Position numbers and translations under genes: made by a program. A model generated the notes under the pieces. It ran no database searches and was not told the DNA's origin. It saw only the letters and a list, made by a program, of their open reading frames with translations. 41,396 nt of DNA from Macrostomum lignano. Taxonomy: Eukaryota. The number at the start of each line of letters is the position of its first letter. The first letter of the stretch is position 1. The stretch is taken from positions 1 to 41,396 of the forward strand of contig NIVC01001326.1 in NCBI GenBank assembly GCA_002269645.1, in the 5' to 3' direction. Shown here one piece after another: positions 17,901 through 23,900 of this stretch.

Positions 17901-20900
17901 GCCCGGCGCGGCTTCACCGCCTCCTCGGCCAGCTGGTGCGGTCCAGACGGCTCCGACGGGTCGCTCCGGCCGTGAAGGTTCTCGGCGACGACGCGGAACT
18001 CGTATTGCCGGCCGCGCATCAGGGAGCTTTCAACTGAGGCCTGGGTGAAGCGGCTCTGGCAGCAGCGGACCCACTGGCCGTCGGGCAACTCTCGTTTCTC
18101 AATGTCGTAGCCGCTGATGTAGGCGGGAGCGCCGTCGGCGTCAGCCGGAGGCGGCTGCCAGGTAAACACCAAGCTAGTCTCGGTCGCTGACTCCAGGTGC
18201 AGACCACGCGGCGGCTCCGGCCTGTCGTTGACGCGAAGCTCCACACTGGCTGACGTGGCGCCGAGGTCATTCTCCAGCGTTAAGCAGTAGACTCCCGAGT
18301 CCTCCCGGCTGAGGTCGTTCACCGTCAGCACACAGTGGCGCTCTTTCTGCTCGGCTTCCAGCTTGCGACCGCCAATCTTCAGATCCGAACCGTTTAACTT
18401 CCAAGTGGACGTTGGCTTCGGACAGGCCGAGAACGGCAGCTTGATGGTCAAACTGTCGCCTTTGTCCATCACGGTGGGCTTCTCAAATCGGGGCGGGACT
18501 TTGATGCGCGGCTCCAAGCGGATAACGAGGTCCGAGCGGCTGCTTCGAGACCCAGCCTTGTTGGAGACGCGGACGCTGTACTCGTCTGCGTCCTCGGCGG
18601 AGCAGTTGTTGATTGTCAGGTAGTACCTGCGCCAGCGGTGAGTTCAAATAAAGTTAAAACACGTCGGAACACATTTACCCCGTCTGACCTACAGCAAAGG
18701 TAGGAAGTCACAGGCGGGCTTTGGTCACTGCCACACATCAGGGCTACAGTCGACCCTCGGCCGGTGAGAGGCAAGCAGTCAAGCCCATTCCGCTGATCCC
18801 TGAGCACGCACACGCAGAAAAATGCGTGCGCAAGCCCAGAAGTTCGTCAGGCATGTGCCCGTACACACTCTGTGCCTTGGAGGTAGCCCTCATGGGCTTG
18901 AATCTTACCTCAAGCTCCAAGGCTAATTACCTTGTACCAATCCCAAAATTATTCAGTATAAAACCCAGGGACATCGGCACTAGAGTCGGACGTGTTAACG
19001 CTGAGCTACTCTGTCTAGAGGAGGACTGACACGCCCATTTCAAGGAAAGGAAAGGACTGCTCCAAATTACTCGGCAATCTCTCACCTGTCTCCATCCTTG
19101 CCCATGTCCAATCGTCCTCCCGGTGCCAGTTCGCGAACACCTTTGAACCATGTGACGTCTAGCGGCGGTGTTCCGGTCACCTGCACCTCGAATTCGGCCC
19201 GCTTGCCTTCGTTGACTTGCAGCCGCTTCAGCTGCGCGGTGAACTCCGGCAGGGTCGCCGAGTTCGGATCGCGGACCGGCACCTTGCGCGATGCGCCTGA
19301 CGGCTCGCTCAAGCCAGCCTCGTTCTCGGCGAACACGCGGAATTCATAGTCCTTACCTTCCACTAGGCCGGGTATGTTAAAGGTGGTGTTCGGAATCGGC
19401 GCAAAGTTCACCCGAGCCCAGGTATCACTGCCCGCCTCGCGTTTCTCAACGTGATATCCGGTGATGCGGCCGCCGCCGTCTGAGACTGGGCGCTGCCAAG
19501 TAAGCGACACGAAGTCGGCGCCGACCTCTTCGGCTGTGGGCTCACCGGGTGACTTTGGCTTGTCTGCGGAGTGAGAAGACACATCATCATGTTCAATCTA
19601 AGACTTCTGTAGGCTTTCCGGGTGACTTTGGCTTGTCTGCGGAGTGAGAAGACCCATCATGTTCAATCTAAAACTGTCTCTGTGGGCGTCCAAAAGTAGT
19701 AAGTCACTACTCTTCATCAGCTGGTCGTACGCTCGTAGAACTAACAGAGTTAGAATCCCACTAGTTGAACGCACTCGTATTCAAATTTCTATAACTATCA
19801 GATGCCCACAATGAAAGATTGGCTTCATATTATTTTCTTTACTAGCTACTGTTCAGTAGGCAATTTCTAGTATATAAATTCAGGATATGCATAGTCTTGC
19901 TAAACACAAACTGCAGGCATCTGTTTTGTTTGATTTTCAATCGATTGTTGGTCAAATCTACCGGTAGTAATATACCGGTAATATACCAGTAATATACCGG
20001 TAGTAAATTAATTTTTAAAATTATGACTCAACCTCGGACCAAGCACATTAATTGCTCAACTTCATATTTGGAAGGCCTGTTTGCGAGACGTTGTCAATAT
20101 AGTGTACTAAACACGGAAAATCTCGATAATGTGTTTTGCAACTAAAACCTCTCATATTGTCCATTTTGAGTCTTCCTCCTGGTCTAGTTGCAGTTTTAGT
20201 TACTGATCCAGATATCTATCTACAGAGGCGTCCATGGCTGGCCCCCTCGGTTATCCCCAGTTAGGCAGGATTATGCTGGTAGGCAGGCAGGCAGGCAGGT
20301 AGGCAACTCACCGAAAGGCATTTTGGCTAACACAGAGTTAGCCGTCTCAATTGGCTGGCTAGAGCCGTTCTCGTTCACAGCCGACACGCGGAAGCTGTAC
20401 TCCGAGCCTTCGACCAGTCCCTGCAGCTCAGCAGCGGTGTCCTGCGGGCAGGGCAGGGTGGGGCAGGGACGCTATGGGGTTGGAGAGAGATTATGAGAAT
20501 TTTTCCTGGCAACGGAGTAACGTCCCCCGTCTGAGTGTAAATGAAATGCATAATTAGGATGGGATACGATCACGTGAAAATTAAAAAAATACATAAATTT
20601 TCCAAGAAAGACATTTTTGAAGCTATTGATTTACTCAAGAAAGGCTTTGAATTGGTTGTAGTTAGCGATAATTTGTAGAAAATTGTCAAAGCAAGAAAAT
20701 GTTCTCTCAGCTCACGAGTAGGAGAGAGTTCGCCGTGACCTGGGCAGCGCTAGTCGCTTCTGTTGCAGTTATAGCCCAGTTTCACTGCACCGCTGGATTT
20801 ACTGTACCGACAACATCGTCATCAAATGCATCCGAGTCATCTGCATCGACTGCAATGCCAATCACAGATGAACCAACAACATCTATAACACCTGCTCCAA

Positions 20901-23900
20901 CAACACCTGAACCATCAACGACACCTGCTCCAACAACACCTGAACCATCAACGGCGGCTGCTCCAACAACACCTGAACCATCAACGACACCTGCTCCAAC
21001 AACACCTGAACCATCAACGGCGCCTGCTCCAACAACACCTGAACCATCAACGGCGCCTGCTCCAACAACACCTGAACCATCAACGGCGCCTGCTCCAACA
21101 ACACCTGAACCATCAACGGCGCCTGCTCCAACAACACCTGAACCATCAACGGCGCCTGCTCCAACAACACCTGAACCATCAACGGCGCCTGCTCCAACAA
21201 CACCTGAACCATCAACGGCGCCTGCTCCAACAACACCTGAACCATCAACGGCGCCTGCTCCAACAACACCTGAACCATCAACGGCGCCTGCTCCAACAAC
21301 ACCTGAACCATCAACGGCGCCTGCTCCAACAACACCTGAACCATCAACGGCGCCTGCTCCAACAACACCTGAACCATCAACGGCGCCTGCTCCAACAACA
21401 CCTGAACCATCAACGGCGCCTGCTCCAACAACACCTGAACCATCAACGGCGCCTGCTCCAACAACACCTGAACCATCAACGGCGCCTGCTCCAACAACAC
21501 CTGAACCATCAACGGCGCCTGCTCCAACAACACCTGAACCATCAACGGCGCCTGCTCCAACAACACCTGAACCATCAACGGCGCCTGCTCCAACAACACC
21601 TGAACCATCAACGGCGCCTGCTCCAACAACACCTGAATCAACGGCGCCTGCTCCAACAACACCTGGCAACCTGACTCAACGGCGCCTGCTCCAACAACAC
21701 CTGAACCATCAACGGCACCTGCTCCAACAACACCTGAACCATCAACGGCGCCTGCTCCAACAACACCTGAACCATCAACAGCACCTGCTTTACCAGCGAC
21801 ATCTGAAACAGTAGTGACAACCGAACCCTCAACTCTTCTATCAACCACAGCTGAATCTACACCTACGACAGAGGCTACAACATTAGTAACGATACTGAAA
21901 TCAACCACCCTGTCTGCTGAACAGATTCACAAGGAGAACCTGCGGCAGAGTGTGATCGCATATCAGCAGGCCACCCTGAACGCTGGCGTGTTCATTGTTC
22001 CCATAATCCTTGGCGCAGGAATTTCCTTTATAATGTACAAAGTAATTGTCCTCGGACTGAAGAATGGACTATAAGTTTAATTGTCACTTGGTTAATATTT
22101 AAATTTGTCTAAACAGTGTCACACAATAAAGTACCGTAAAAAAATCGAATTAAATATTATTGGGCTAATTTTACTCTGAAGCTCTTCTTTATTTTACATA
22201 TCAAGAGAACGCTTACCTTACAGAAGGAAGCCACAGTAAGCCAGTTGTCCTTTCCAGTTTCGCGTCGATCCACCACGTAGTGCGTCACCTTGGAGCCTCC
22301 GTCCTCGCGCGGCGGCTTCCAGGTCAGTTTGCAGGAACTCTTTGTCACTTCGCTAGCCTGTAAAGGCCCCGTGGGCGCGCCTGGCGGACATTTGACCTTC
22401 AGCTTGAACGTCACCTGCGCTGAGCCGCTATCGTTGGCCAGCTCAAGGCGATACTCGCCAGAATCCTCGGCCACCAGGTCCCGCAGTCCAACCGTCACAT
22501 AGTCGTCAAATTCTTGCAGCCTGACGCGGTCGCTTGCGCTGACGTCTTTGCCGGAATGGCGCAGCGTCAGACGCAGCGGCCCGTCCCCAGTGTAGGGAAT
22601 CTTCAGTTTTAGCGATTCGCCCAGCGGTGCGGTCTGATCAGGCAGGCTGCGATCCACACGCGGCGCTCGCATCACCGTCAGGCGAGCCGAAGCTGACTCG
22701 CGGCCGGCCTTGCTGACCAATTGACATTCGATTTCGCCAGCGTCCGCCTCTGTCAGATCTGTCAGCGTCAGCGTAGCTGTCTCTCCATCGGAAGTAACCT
22801 GGGCTCGCGCAGACGGCCGAATCTCGACGCCGCCTCGCATCCAGCGAATCTCCGGCGGCGGCTTGCCATCGATGCGGCAAGAGAAGACAGCCGTTCCACC
22901 GACGGCGCCGGATGCCGGCTGTAGGCGACTGAGAAACTCCGGCGCAGTTCCCGACGTCTTGTCGAGAATCTTTACTGGCAATGAAGCCGGGGACGACTCG
23001 CTAGCACCACAGGCGTTGAGAGCAGCAACGCGAAACTCTAGCTCGTCGTTCTCTGTTAGTCCGTCAATGATTGCCTCTGTGGAGACGGCGGGCACCGTGG
23101 CAGCCGTTTCCCAATCTCCGTCGCCAGCACCTTTTTTGCGCTTTTCAACGCGATAGCCGGTCAATCGGGAGCCACCGTCGTTAATCGGCTTCGTCCAAGC
23201 CAGTTCGGCGTAGTTCTTGCCAGTCTTATTGACCATTGGTGAGCCGGGCGCCGAAGGCGCTGTCGTCTTTGATTTTGTCTCTACGGCATGCGAGGCCTCG
23301 CTGGGCTCGCCCAGTCCAGCTTCGTTCTTGGCCGTGACGCGGAACTCGTATTTGGCATTGGTCTCCAGACCAGTCGCTTTAGCCGTGGTCTCTCTACCAG
23401 GAACTTCAGCTACTCTTTTCCACTTGCCAGACCCGCCAGCTGGTCGGCACTCAACAACGTAACCAGTGATCTTGCTACCACCATCGTCGCGCGGTTTTCG
23501 CCAGGACAGCGACACTGAATCAGCGTCTGCATCGGTGGCGGAAACAGATTCGGGTGCGGAGGCCGCGCGATAGGCCGGTTTGGGTGTCACAGGCGTCTCC
23601 AGCTCCAGTGGTTCGCTCAGACCGTTGCGATTCTCAGCACGGACGCGGAAGCGGACTGGCTTGTCAGTCTCCAGACCCATGGCCTCGTACTCGGGCTTGC
23701 GCACGAACTTTGACACCGGAGACCACTCGCCGGTGCGCGGGTCTTGCTTCTCCACTACGTAATTGTCTATCGGGGCACCGCCGTCGTCTTTTGGCGGTCG
23801 CCAGGCCAGAGCGCAAGAATCGGCGCCAACCTTTGTTACCTCAAGCGGTCCTTCTGGTGGTGCCGGCTTATCAACGACATTTACCTGGAATTGAAGTCGT

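Follow-up and report, generated by a model that had tools for sequence, protein, structure and literature searches.

An intron of a twitchin/titin-like gene in the flatworm Macrostomum lignano appears to hold, on its opposite strand, an orphan, intronless gene that would encode a small mucin-like membrane protein of type I, a reading to which we assign a probability of roughly 0.6. The candidate gene lies within the window, by which we mean the whole 41,396-nt stretch of contig NIVC01001326.1 (assembly GCA_002269645.1) that was analyzed.

The host intron and the unit nested within it

The host gene runs on the minus strand, and its successive exons carry Pfam fn3, I-set and Pkinase domains. 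This is the organization by which we recognized a twitchin/titin-like giant kinase: FN3 and I-set Ig domains follow one another in arrays, and close to the C-terminus comes a Ser/Thr kinase domain with Ig domains after it. A UniRef protein with 100% identity shows that the window is M. lignano DNA. Wherever the two overlap, the kinase exon agrees at 100% identity with the M. lignano "Titin" model A0A1I8HU25 and with A0A1I8I0P1, and both exons that border the intron of interest are found verbatim in these two models; an exact-sequence look-up of the M. lignano kinase fragment returned no record. Because more than 7.6 kb of host exons contain no frameshifts, the base-level quality of the sequence is good outside repeats.

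The intron, as read from the sequence, occupies 20442-22216 on the minus strand (1,775 nt, GT-AG, phase 0). The preceding exon ends at 22217 with the donor ...ASFCK|GTAAGC, and the acceptor, ...CCCGCAG|GACACC, leads into DTAAEL. One FN3 domain is thereby split, with Pfam fn3 halves on both sides and exon B (20312-20441) corresponding to profile positions 49-83. The coordinates, the junction and the splitting of an FN3 domain agree with the earlier note, which had described a 1,775-nt intron interrupting an FN3 domain at ASFCK|DTAAEL; its numbering of that domain as FN3 number 13 is in rough agreement with the domain counts in the window. When joined across the intron, the exons align without gaps to the uninterrupted FN3 domains of relatives. 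At the orthologous position in these relatives (one contig from a TARA metagenome and one from Logan, 42% identical) the FN3 domain is continuous, and therefore the intron is not common to them, a comparison that does not address close relatives; a scan of metagenome contigs yielded no close relatives of the host exon. The features of the locus, in window positions, are:

22217..23755, minus strand: host exon upstream of the intron; FN3-FN3-Ig-Ig-first half of FN3, ending ...WLTVASFCK; 100% match to M. lignano titin model P0238
20312..20441, minus strand: host exon B, 130 nt; second half of the split FN3, ending ...MPF; donor GTGAGT
20699..21814, plus strand: nested ORF as assembled, 371 aa; signal peptide, S/T-rich linker, repeats, 48-aa out-of-frame tail, TAG
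20699..20776, plus strand: signal-peptide-like N-terminus; basic n-region, 15-residue hydrophobic core, small residues at -3/-1; hydropathy maximum 2.65
20891..21789, plus strand: tandem array of a 33-bp unit encoding an 11-residue peptide; 27.2 copies, 96% matches
21666..21673, plus strand: frame-shifting 8-nt insertion GCAACCTG in repeat 24; its removal gives a single 455-aa ORF
21674..22074, plus strand: C-terminal part in the shifted frame; three more 11-residue repeats, S/T-rich stalk, juxtamembrane segment, anchor, KNGL, TAA
21985..22059, plus strand: hydrophobic C-terminal 25-mer, the putative anchor; 19-residue Kyte-Doolittle maximum 2.19
22125..22130, plus strand: AATAAA, putative poly(A) signal, 51 nt past the stop; then an A7 run at 22138-22144 and ATTAAA at 22149
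21931..22056, minus strand: antisense of the nested C-terminal coding region; a 42-codon exon in the public titin model A0A1I8HU25

On the far side of exon B, the junction with the next exon reads MPF|DKPKSPGEP, the same as in P0238.

The ATG at 20699, the TAA at 22072-22074 and the AATAAA at 22125-22130 all lie inside the intron and overlap no exon, which is the position expected of a nested gene and places the start, stop and polyadenylation signal where the earlier note had them. From ATG to stop the unit covers 1,376 nt, or 77.5% of the intron (about 78% had been proposed), leaving 257 nt of free intron before the ATG on the host acceptor side and approximately 70 nt after the poly(A) region on the donor side. 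The start codon has an A at -3. An acceptor-like TTTGTAG lying 20 nt upstream of it, together with an E-box or TATA-like words, is all that hints at a promoter or trans-splice site belonging to the unit itself. The unique coding parts, with a GC content of 0.46-0.49, are richer in G and C than the intron flanks (0.28-0.40). The AATAAA, for its part, is a mere consensus match within AT-rich DNA.

The predicted protein of this unit begins with a putative signal peptide, as judged by a heuristic of n-, h- and c-regions. Its center is a P/T/S-rich tandem-repeat domain with 27 copies of an 11-residue unit, which matches the approximately 27 nearly identical 33-bp repeats claimed earlier. Units 4-22 (19 consecutive) are identical and 20 units carry the consensus; serine, threonine and proline together make up 73% of the repeat peptide in the array, and the repaired protein as a whole contains 34% S+T and 25% P. 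The A/C-rich composition that had been remarked upon is likewise evident in the array, with a GC skew of about -0.48 and an AT skew of about +0.44. Judged from its hydropathy, the C-terminal 25-mer may form a transmembrane helix followed by a 4-residue tail or, possibly, a GPI-signal-like end.

If the frame is repaired, the conceptual product of 455 amino acids would thus carry a cleavable signal peptide at its N-terminus, followed by an extended proline/threonine/serine-rich ectodomain, presumably with dense O-glycosylation, in which an 11-residue repeat recurs 27 times almost unchanged, then a short stalk and a single C-terminal hydrophobic anchor with almost no cytoplasmic tail. Such a product, made from a gene antisense within its twitchin/titin-like host, could give the expressing cell a hydrated, anti-adhesive or protective coat. 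We infer the transcription, glycosylation, membrane topology and function of the nested gene, and likewise the cause of its frameshift.

A frameshift within the repeat array

The earlier note described the nested gene as complete, and here it does not hold: as assembled, the 8-nt insertion at 21666-21673 divides the coding sequence between two frames. Repeat 23 is 30 nt long and keeps the frame; repeat 24 is 38 nt long, a 30-nt variant with 8 extra bases. Because of these extra bases, the frame that opens at the ATG continues past the insertion as a tail of 48 nonsense residues, and its stop codon at 21812-21814 gives 371 aa. Consistent with this, the 1,376 nt from ATG to TAA are not divisible by 3, and the transmembrane segment and the TAA at 22072 sit in a frame other than that of the ATG, which the anchor joins only when the 8 nt are removed. 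Before the insertion, the frame that encodes the 11-residue repeat is the one read from the ATG through the signal peptide; after it, the repeat-encoding frame continues for 95 codons past the array, through the anchor, to the TAA. We considered whether a small intron might skip the frameshift and rejected this, as GT does not occur anywhere in the array and the 8 additional nt lack splice signals.

The frameshift could be an assembly (consensus) error in the repeat array, or it could be a real and recent inactivating allele. Short-read polishing is weak within repeat arrays. The public M. lignano assemblies derive from early PacBio reads polished with short reads (PMC5730564). An 8-nt insertion is atypical of long-read error, for which 1 nt is typical, and may be real. 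A real 8-nt allele would yield a secreted product of 371 aa with a basic nonsense tail and without the anchor.

Chance, decay and origin

Several observations bear on whether the nested unit is a gene at all. In a word-indexed search of 5.8 billion proteins, neither the N- nor the C-terminal end of the nested protein had a match at E<=1, and the C-terminal 95 aa had 0 matches when compared exhaustively, by HMMER, with 1.84 billion representatives. Proteins with these termini are absent among the predicted proteins searched, which include UniRef entries for M. lignano. An exact-sequence look-up of the 371-aa ORF found no record, a JGI metagenome locus scan for the nested protein found nothing, and there is no paralogue of either end elsewhere in the window, where Rfam and tRNA scans were also empty. 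Pfam detected nothing significant in the nested protein, with no SEA or other mucin-associated domain. Taken with the two protein searches, this gives neither homology to known mucins nor a conserved mucin-associated domain that would place the protein in the MUC family. As the word-indexed search gave no homologue of either end and the HMMER search none of the C-terminal end, there is no evidence of purifying selection. The nested ORF prefers A/T-ending codons, unlike its host: GC3 is 0.41-0.43 in its unique parts and as low as 0.17 in its repeats, compared with 0.67 in the host and 0.57-0.74 across the host and neighboring ORFs. Codon use suggests that this orphan gene is young.

The same absence of homologues fits a reading in which a minisatellite with a 33-bp period, one of many in this genome, simply keeps frames open, the start, the hydrophobic segments and the AATAAA being coincidental. 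Tandem arrays make up 31% of the window, this one is essentially open in four of its six frames, and the S/T-rich flanks may be decayed repeat copies. Moreover, open-frame extensions of at least 200 nt adjoin other arrays in the window, and since this within-window control did not discriminate alone, we turned to simulations of the signal-peptide-like start and the transmembrane-like end. In Markov-simulated sequence, 0.9-1.2% of the ATG ORFs with 64 codons or more have the former, and 0.3-0.5% of the open frames with 95 codons or more have the latter. At about 1% and about 0.4%, their joint occurrence on one strand has a chance of about 5e-5, before any requirement on ORF length. In the window itself, a signal-peptide-like start is found in one of the 68 ATG ORFs of at least 60 aa, namely the nested ORF, and neither it nor a transmembrane-like end is present in the other non-exonic ORFs. 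Furthermore, the two features share their peptide register with the one mucin-like frame. The architecture is therefore unlikely to have arisen by chance, and we consider the coincidental reading very improbable. The earlier proposal of a signal peptide, mucin-like repeats and a membrane anchor contained wholly within the intron on the opposite strand is sustained, as by these simulations the combination lies far beyond chance.

A more serious competitor, though still an unlikely one, is a recently dead pseudogene, in which the 8-nt insertion is real and there is no membrane mucin but at most a secreted 371-aa fragment. The assembled sequence does, after all, contain the frameshift, consensus errors do not usually take the form of an 8-nt indel, codon use tends atypically toward AT-ending triplets, and the gene is missing from the predicted proteins that were searched. 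Nonetheless, the disabling lesion is the only one, assemblies of the M. lignano genome may plausibly contain indel errors within arrays (PMC5730564), and the downstream frame is open for 133 codons past the shift with anchor and stop intact; hence any inactivation must have been very recent.

It is far less probable that the region belongs to the host, either as an alternative minus-strand titin/twitchin exon or, through the minus-strand frame of the array, as a spring-like insert. The model A0A1I8HU25 does take 42 codons from here (22056-21931, minus strand, flanked by AG as acceptor and GTGAAT as donor), and two minus-strand frames of the array are open. However, A0A1I8HU25 is an automated prediction, and an insert at this point would fall in the middle of an FN3 fold that is uninterrupted in the relatives examined. 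Likewise, read-through from the upstream exon meets a stop after 19 codons, and the minus-strand ORFs of the array hardly reach beyond it.

Within the preferred reading of a nested mucin-like gene, two accounts of its origin deserve mention, and both strike us as doubtful. The earlier note suggested a retrocopy or a de novo insertion; a processed retrocopy would here descend from a multi-exon parent located elsewhere. The unit is indeed intronless and has a short A7 run downstream of its poly(A) signal; but the run begins 8 nt after the AATAAA with no long poly(A) remnant, and the longest word shared by the flanks is 9 nt (TAAAAAAAT), a length of at least 9 being reached in 100 of 500 shuffles (20%). 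No target-site duplication thus stands above chance, and the suggested search for a parent gene with the non-repetitive ends found neither a parent nor a paralogue or other homologue in the protein databases or the window, leaving the proposal improbable. It is also conceivable, at a similarly low probability, that the gene arose where it now lies, when a coding minisatellite, situated in an AT-rich intron and in a genome very rich in repeats, gained a start with a hydrophobic leader as well as a hydrophobic tail and so became a lineage-specific surface mucin, with the frameshift acting as a polymorphic switch between anchored and secreted forms. Birth in place would explain the lack of homologues, the intron-like A/T-ending codons and the near-perfect homogeneity of the repeats. 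More generally, given its orphan status and AT-ending codons, the gene may have a de novo or young origin.

Annotation and relation to known systems

The main value of these observations lies in annotation, in that the public M. lignano titin/twitchin model A0A1I8HU25 appears to carry antisense sequence of the nested ORF; the 42-codon exon that results, lying within an FN3 domain, is probably spurious, an artefact of annotation. If expressed, the nested gene would supply an orphan surface or secreted mucin-like protein in a flatworm model for adhesion, regeneration and reproduction, as well as a tractable antisense nested gene in a highly expressed muscle gene. The feature is nonetheless of an ordinary kind, intron-nested genes being common, and the current understanding of nested genes and mucins is unchanged.

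Nested intronic protein-coding genes are common in animals, accounting for example for about 10% of Drosophila melanogaster genes (PMC3814207; PMC5174743). The candidate M. lignano gene resembles them in being short, intronless and antisense to its host, a long gene of which a single intron contains it wholly and without exon overlap, and its young or orphan character is also typical. It differs in that its frame is broken in the assembly, and its host is a flatworm twitchin/titin-like gene; the literature we searched contained no nested gene within twitchin.

Small membrane-tethered sialomucin-type proteins combine a signal peptide, an ectodomain of Pro/Thr/Ser tandem repeats and a single anchor. 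The nested protein, with its frame repaired, would share with these, and with MUC1-type VNTR proteins, the signal peptide, a P/T/S ectodomain built from a nearly homogeneous coding minisatellite, and the single anchor. In contrast to membrane mucins, it lacks a SEA, EGF or other mucin-associated domain, shows no similarity to mucins, and has a cytoplasmic tail of 4 residues. The polymorphic mucins of Schistosoma mansoni (SmPoMuc) are repeat mucins of flatworms. So are the Echinococcus apomucins (PMC3510090). Both belong to the same phylum as the predicted M. lignano protein and, like it, are small, secreted or anchored, T/P-rich and lineage-restricted, and have a signal peptide as well as a hydrophobic C-terminus; however, there is no detectable homology, M. 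lignano is free-living, and the repeat unit and ends differ. Should the frameshift be real, the locus would be an example of a frameshift within a coding VNTR. In MUC1-fs alleles, a frameshift in the VNTR gives an anchor-less protein with a basic neo-tail (PMC12458345, PMC5843638), and the frameshift in the nested array would have the same consequence.

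The host intron and the split FN3 domain

The host, a twitchin/titin-like giant muscle-protein gene, is read from the minus strand, where long exons encode in succession FN3 and I-set Ig domains, a protein kinase domain and terminal Ig domains (Pfam).

Exons at the 3′ end of the host gene
17186–18517 and 16363–16884, minus strand: kinase domain (Pfam)
13193–14317, minus strand: last exon

The 1,775-nt intron described in the earlier note is real on reading the sequence (20442–22216, phase 0): the upstream exon (...WLTVASFCK) runs to 22217, where GTAAGC begins the intron; at its other end the intron closes with a pyrimidine-rich stretch, then CAG at 20442, after which exon B (20312–20441) opens with DTAAELQG. 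An FN3 domain is indeed split, because exon B matches positions 49–83 of the Pfam fn3 profile and the two exons, placed end to end, give a gapless alignment with the uninterrupted FN3 of the two nearest fetchable relatives (~42% identity). The nearest retrievable twitchin-like loci, L001/L002 (TARA and ENA metagenome contigs) and L003 (Logan SRR31792732), combine very long exons with introns of ~80–150 nt. No intron lies at the M. lignano split position in these relatives (~42% identity); hence the intron is either lineage-specific or was lost in the taxa of L001, L002 and L003.

Over the shared part, the host kinase exon is 100% identical to UniRef A0A1I8I0P1 (Macrostomum lignano), and A0A1I8HU25 ('Titin', 2,585 aa), from the same UniRef cluster, contains the window's exons. 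This assigns the window to M. lignano, a free-living flatworm. Between ASFCK and DTAAEL, inside the split FN3, A0A1I8HU25 has 52 extra residues. Forty-two match, residue for residue, the antisense translation of the C-terminal coding/anchor region of the nested open reading frame (22056–21931), from a 126-nt piece (21931–22056, minus strand) bounded by canonical AG and GTGAAT sites; the other ten are read-through of the true acceptor (20442–20471, minus strand). Such an insert would break up the FN3 fold, and the FN3 of the nearest retrievable relatives lacks it in the joined-exon alignment; it is therefore most likely a gene-prediction artefact brought about by the nested gene.

Orphan proteins with Pro/Thr/Ser repeats, a signal peptide and an anchor are common. 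Among protein-coding overlaps in animals, a nested gene on the opposite strand is the commonest kind, and such genes are usually short and young (PMC3814207, PMC5174743). The literature searched yielded no paper that treats twitchin together with a nested gene; twitchin as the host is a detail of location.

A plus-strand mucin-like unit and its reading frame

Layout of the nested unit
20699, plus strand: ATG, with A at −3
From 20699, plus strand: N-terminus with signal-peptide n-, h- and c-regions
Between N-terminus and array, plus strand: S/T-rich linker
20891–21789, plus strand: array of 27 units × 33 bp; units 4–22 identical; consensus in 20
Between array and anchor, plus strand: further S/T-rich stretch (stalk) and juxtamembrane segment
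21985–22059, plus strand: hydrophobic anchor, 25 residues
22072–22074, plus strand: TAA, preceded by KNGL
22125–22130, plus strand: AATAAA

The A/C-rich strand bias noticed earlier is confirmed by composition, and the estimate of about 27 near-identical 33-bp repeats agrees with the array, in which 19 consecutive units are identical. The host splice signals are left intact, with 257 nt of intron remaining between the host acceptor and the nested ATG and ~70 nt separating the nested poly(A) region from the host donor. On the host sense (minus) strand each repeat unit of the array reads CGCCGTTGATGGTTCAGGTGTTGTTGGAGCAGG, which places 27 weak donor-like CAG/GTGTTG and acceptor-like GCAG/G sites within the host intron.

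The claim that the open reading frame is complete and continuous fails, in that ATG to TAA spans 1,376 nt, which is not divisible by three. Repeat 23, at 30 nt, is a variant that stays in frame, and repeat 24 is the same variant with 8 additional bases, GCAACCTG (21666–21673), owing to which the ATG frame changes and stops early at 21812–21814, giving 371 aa; the anchor and its TAA lie in another frame. Removal of the 8 nt in silico yields a single 455-aa open reading frame with exactly the architecture first described, so that signal peptide, repeats, anchor and stop are all present, but share one frame only after this deletion. An intron skipping the lesion is ruled out, as the array has no GT.

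Short-read polishing is unreliable within long arrays of near-identical units. The insertion may be an assembly error: the ~900-bp array is poor ground for such polishing, and more than 7.6 kb of host exons have no frameshifts, so the unique sequence is accurate. The public M. lignano assemblies come from early PacBio reads with short-read polishing (PMC5730564). It may equally be a real allele, an 8-nt insertion being unlike the usual single-base long-read error. Its product would be secreted, anchor-less and with a basic neo-tail, formally like that of MUC1 VNTR frameshift alleles (PMC12458345, PMC5843638). Another possibility is that the insertion marks a pseudogene of very recent date; any inactivation would be recent, because 133 downstream codons remain open. 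Exact-sequence look-ups and metagenome contig scans found no second copy of the locus.

Chance, novelty and origin

In a window full of minisatellites it is worth considering that the nested frame is a chance product. The 33-bp period keeps frames open, so four of the six frames of the array are essentially open, and open extensions of at least 200 nt also occur beside other arrays in the window, making length alone weak evidence. Nonetheless, in composition-matched Markov simulations, a signal-peptide-like start occurs in 0.9–1.2% of ATG open reading frames of at least 64 codons and a comparable hydrophobic end in 0.3–0.5% of open frames 95 codons or longer, by thresholds that were set after viewing the sequence, yet are stricter than customary. 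In the real window, only the nested frame among 68 ATG open reading frames of at least 60 aa has such a start, and the sole other TM-like end is in a probable exon of a neighboring gene. Furthermore, the post-insertion frame that reaches the anchor is the one that keeps the 11-residue repeat peptide in repeats 25–27. Taken together, these observations make a chance origin unlikely.

The nested gene is, on present sequence comparisons, an orphan, and probably young. A word-indexed protein search found no homologues of its N- and C-ends, the C-terminal 95 aa had none among 1.84 billion representatives searched exhaustively with HMMER, Pfam gave no match for the protein, and the predicted proteins searched, UniRef M. 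lignano entries among them, include none with its ends. Likewise, its GC3 (unique parts 0.41–0.43; repeats 0.17) departs from that of host exons (0.67) and neighboring plus-strand open reading frames (0.57–0.74). Absent homologues and deviant codon use argue against a well-established functional gene. Nothing speaks positively for the suggested retrocopy: the flanks share no word longer than 9 nt, a length that 20% of shuffles also reach, the poly(A) signal is followed by no more than an A7 run, and no parent gene is known from the protein databases or the window.

Predicted product and surroundings

Were the gene expressed, its product would be routed into the secretory pathway and the leader cleaved off; dense O-glycosylation of ~150 Thr/Ser, with prolines keeping the chain extended, would give a brush-like surface coat tethered at the C-terminus by one anchor, leaving next to nothing in the cytoplasm. 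The end might instead be of GPI type rather than a TM anchor. The protein would work like the small membrane sialomucins, although by sequence and by domains it lies outside all mucin families. SL trans-splicing affects 38.8% of M. lignano genes (PMC5730564), so the TTTGTAG located 20 nt upstream of the nested ATG might, speculatively, be a trans-splice acceptor. On the mutually exclusive expression or transcriptional interference that the earlier note puts forward as possibilities, published work is divided: nested genes show expression divergence in Drosophila (PMC5174743) and none in mammals (PMC8467205).

Repeats make up more than half of the M. lignano genome, and simple and tandem repeats 15% (PMC5730564); in the window, tandem arrays make up 31%, about twice that figure, as 24 mini- and microsatellite arrays with periods of 4–73 nt. 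Intergenic DNA and the introns of the twitchin-like gene contain most of them.

Example arrays and other plus-strand open reading frames
1–883, 5956–6941, 12321–13150, 36464–38007, 38775–39860, 40095–41223: tandem arrays
9357–9695, 10051–10479, 991–1389, 3742–4137, 4189–4587, plus strand: open reading frames, GC3 0.57–0.74

None of these five frames has a Pfam match. The one at 9357 has a hydrophobic N-terminus, 10051–10479 an S/T-rich stalk followed by a C-terminal TM segment, and 3742–4137 a TM segment and an acidic tail. They are probably exons of at least one membrane-protein gene convergent with the 3′ end of the twitchin-like gene.
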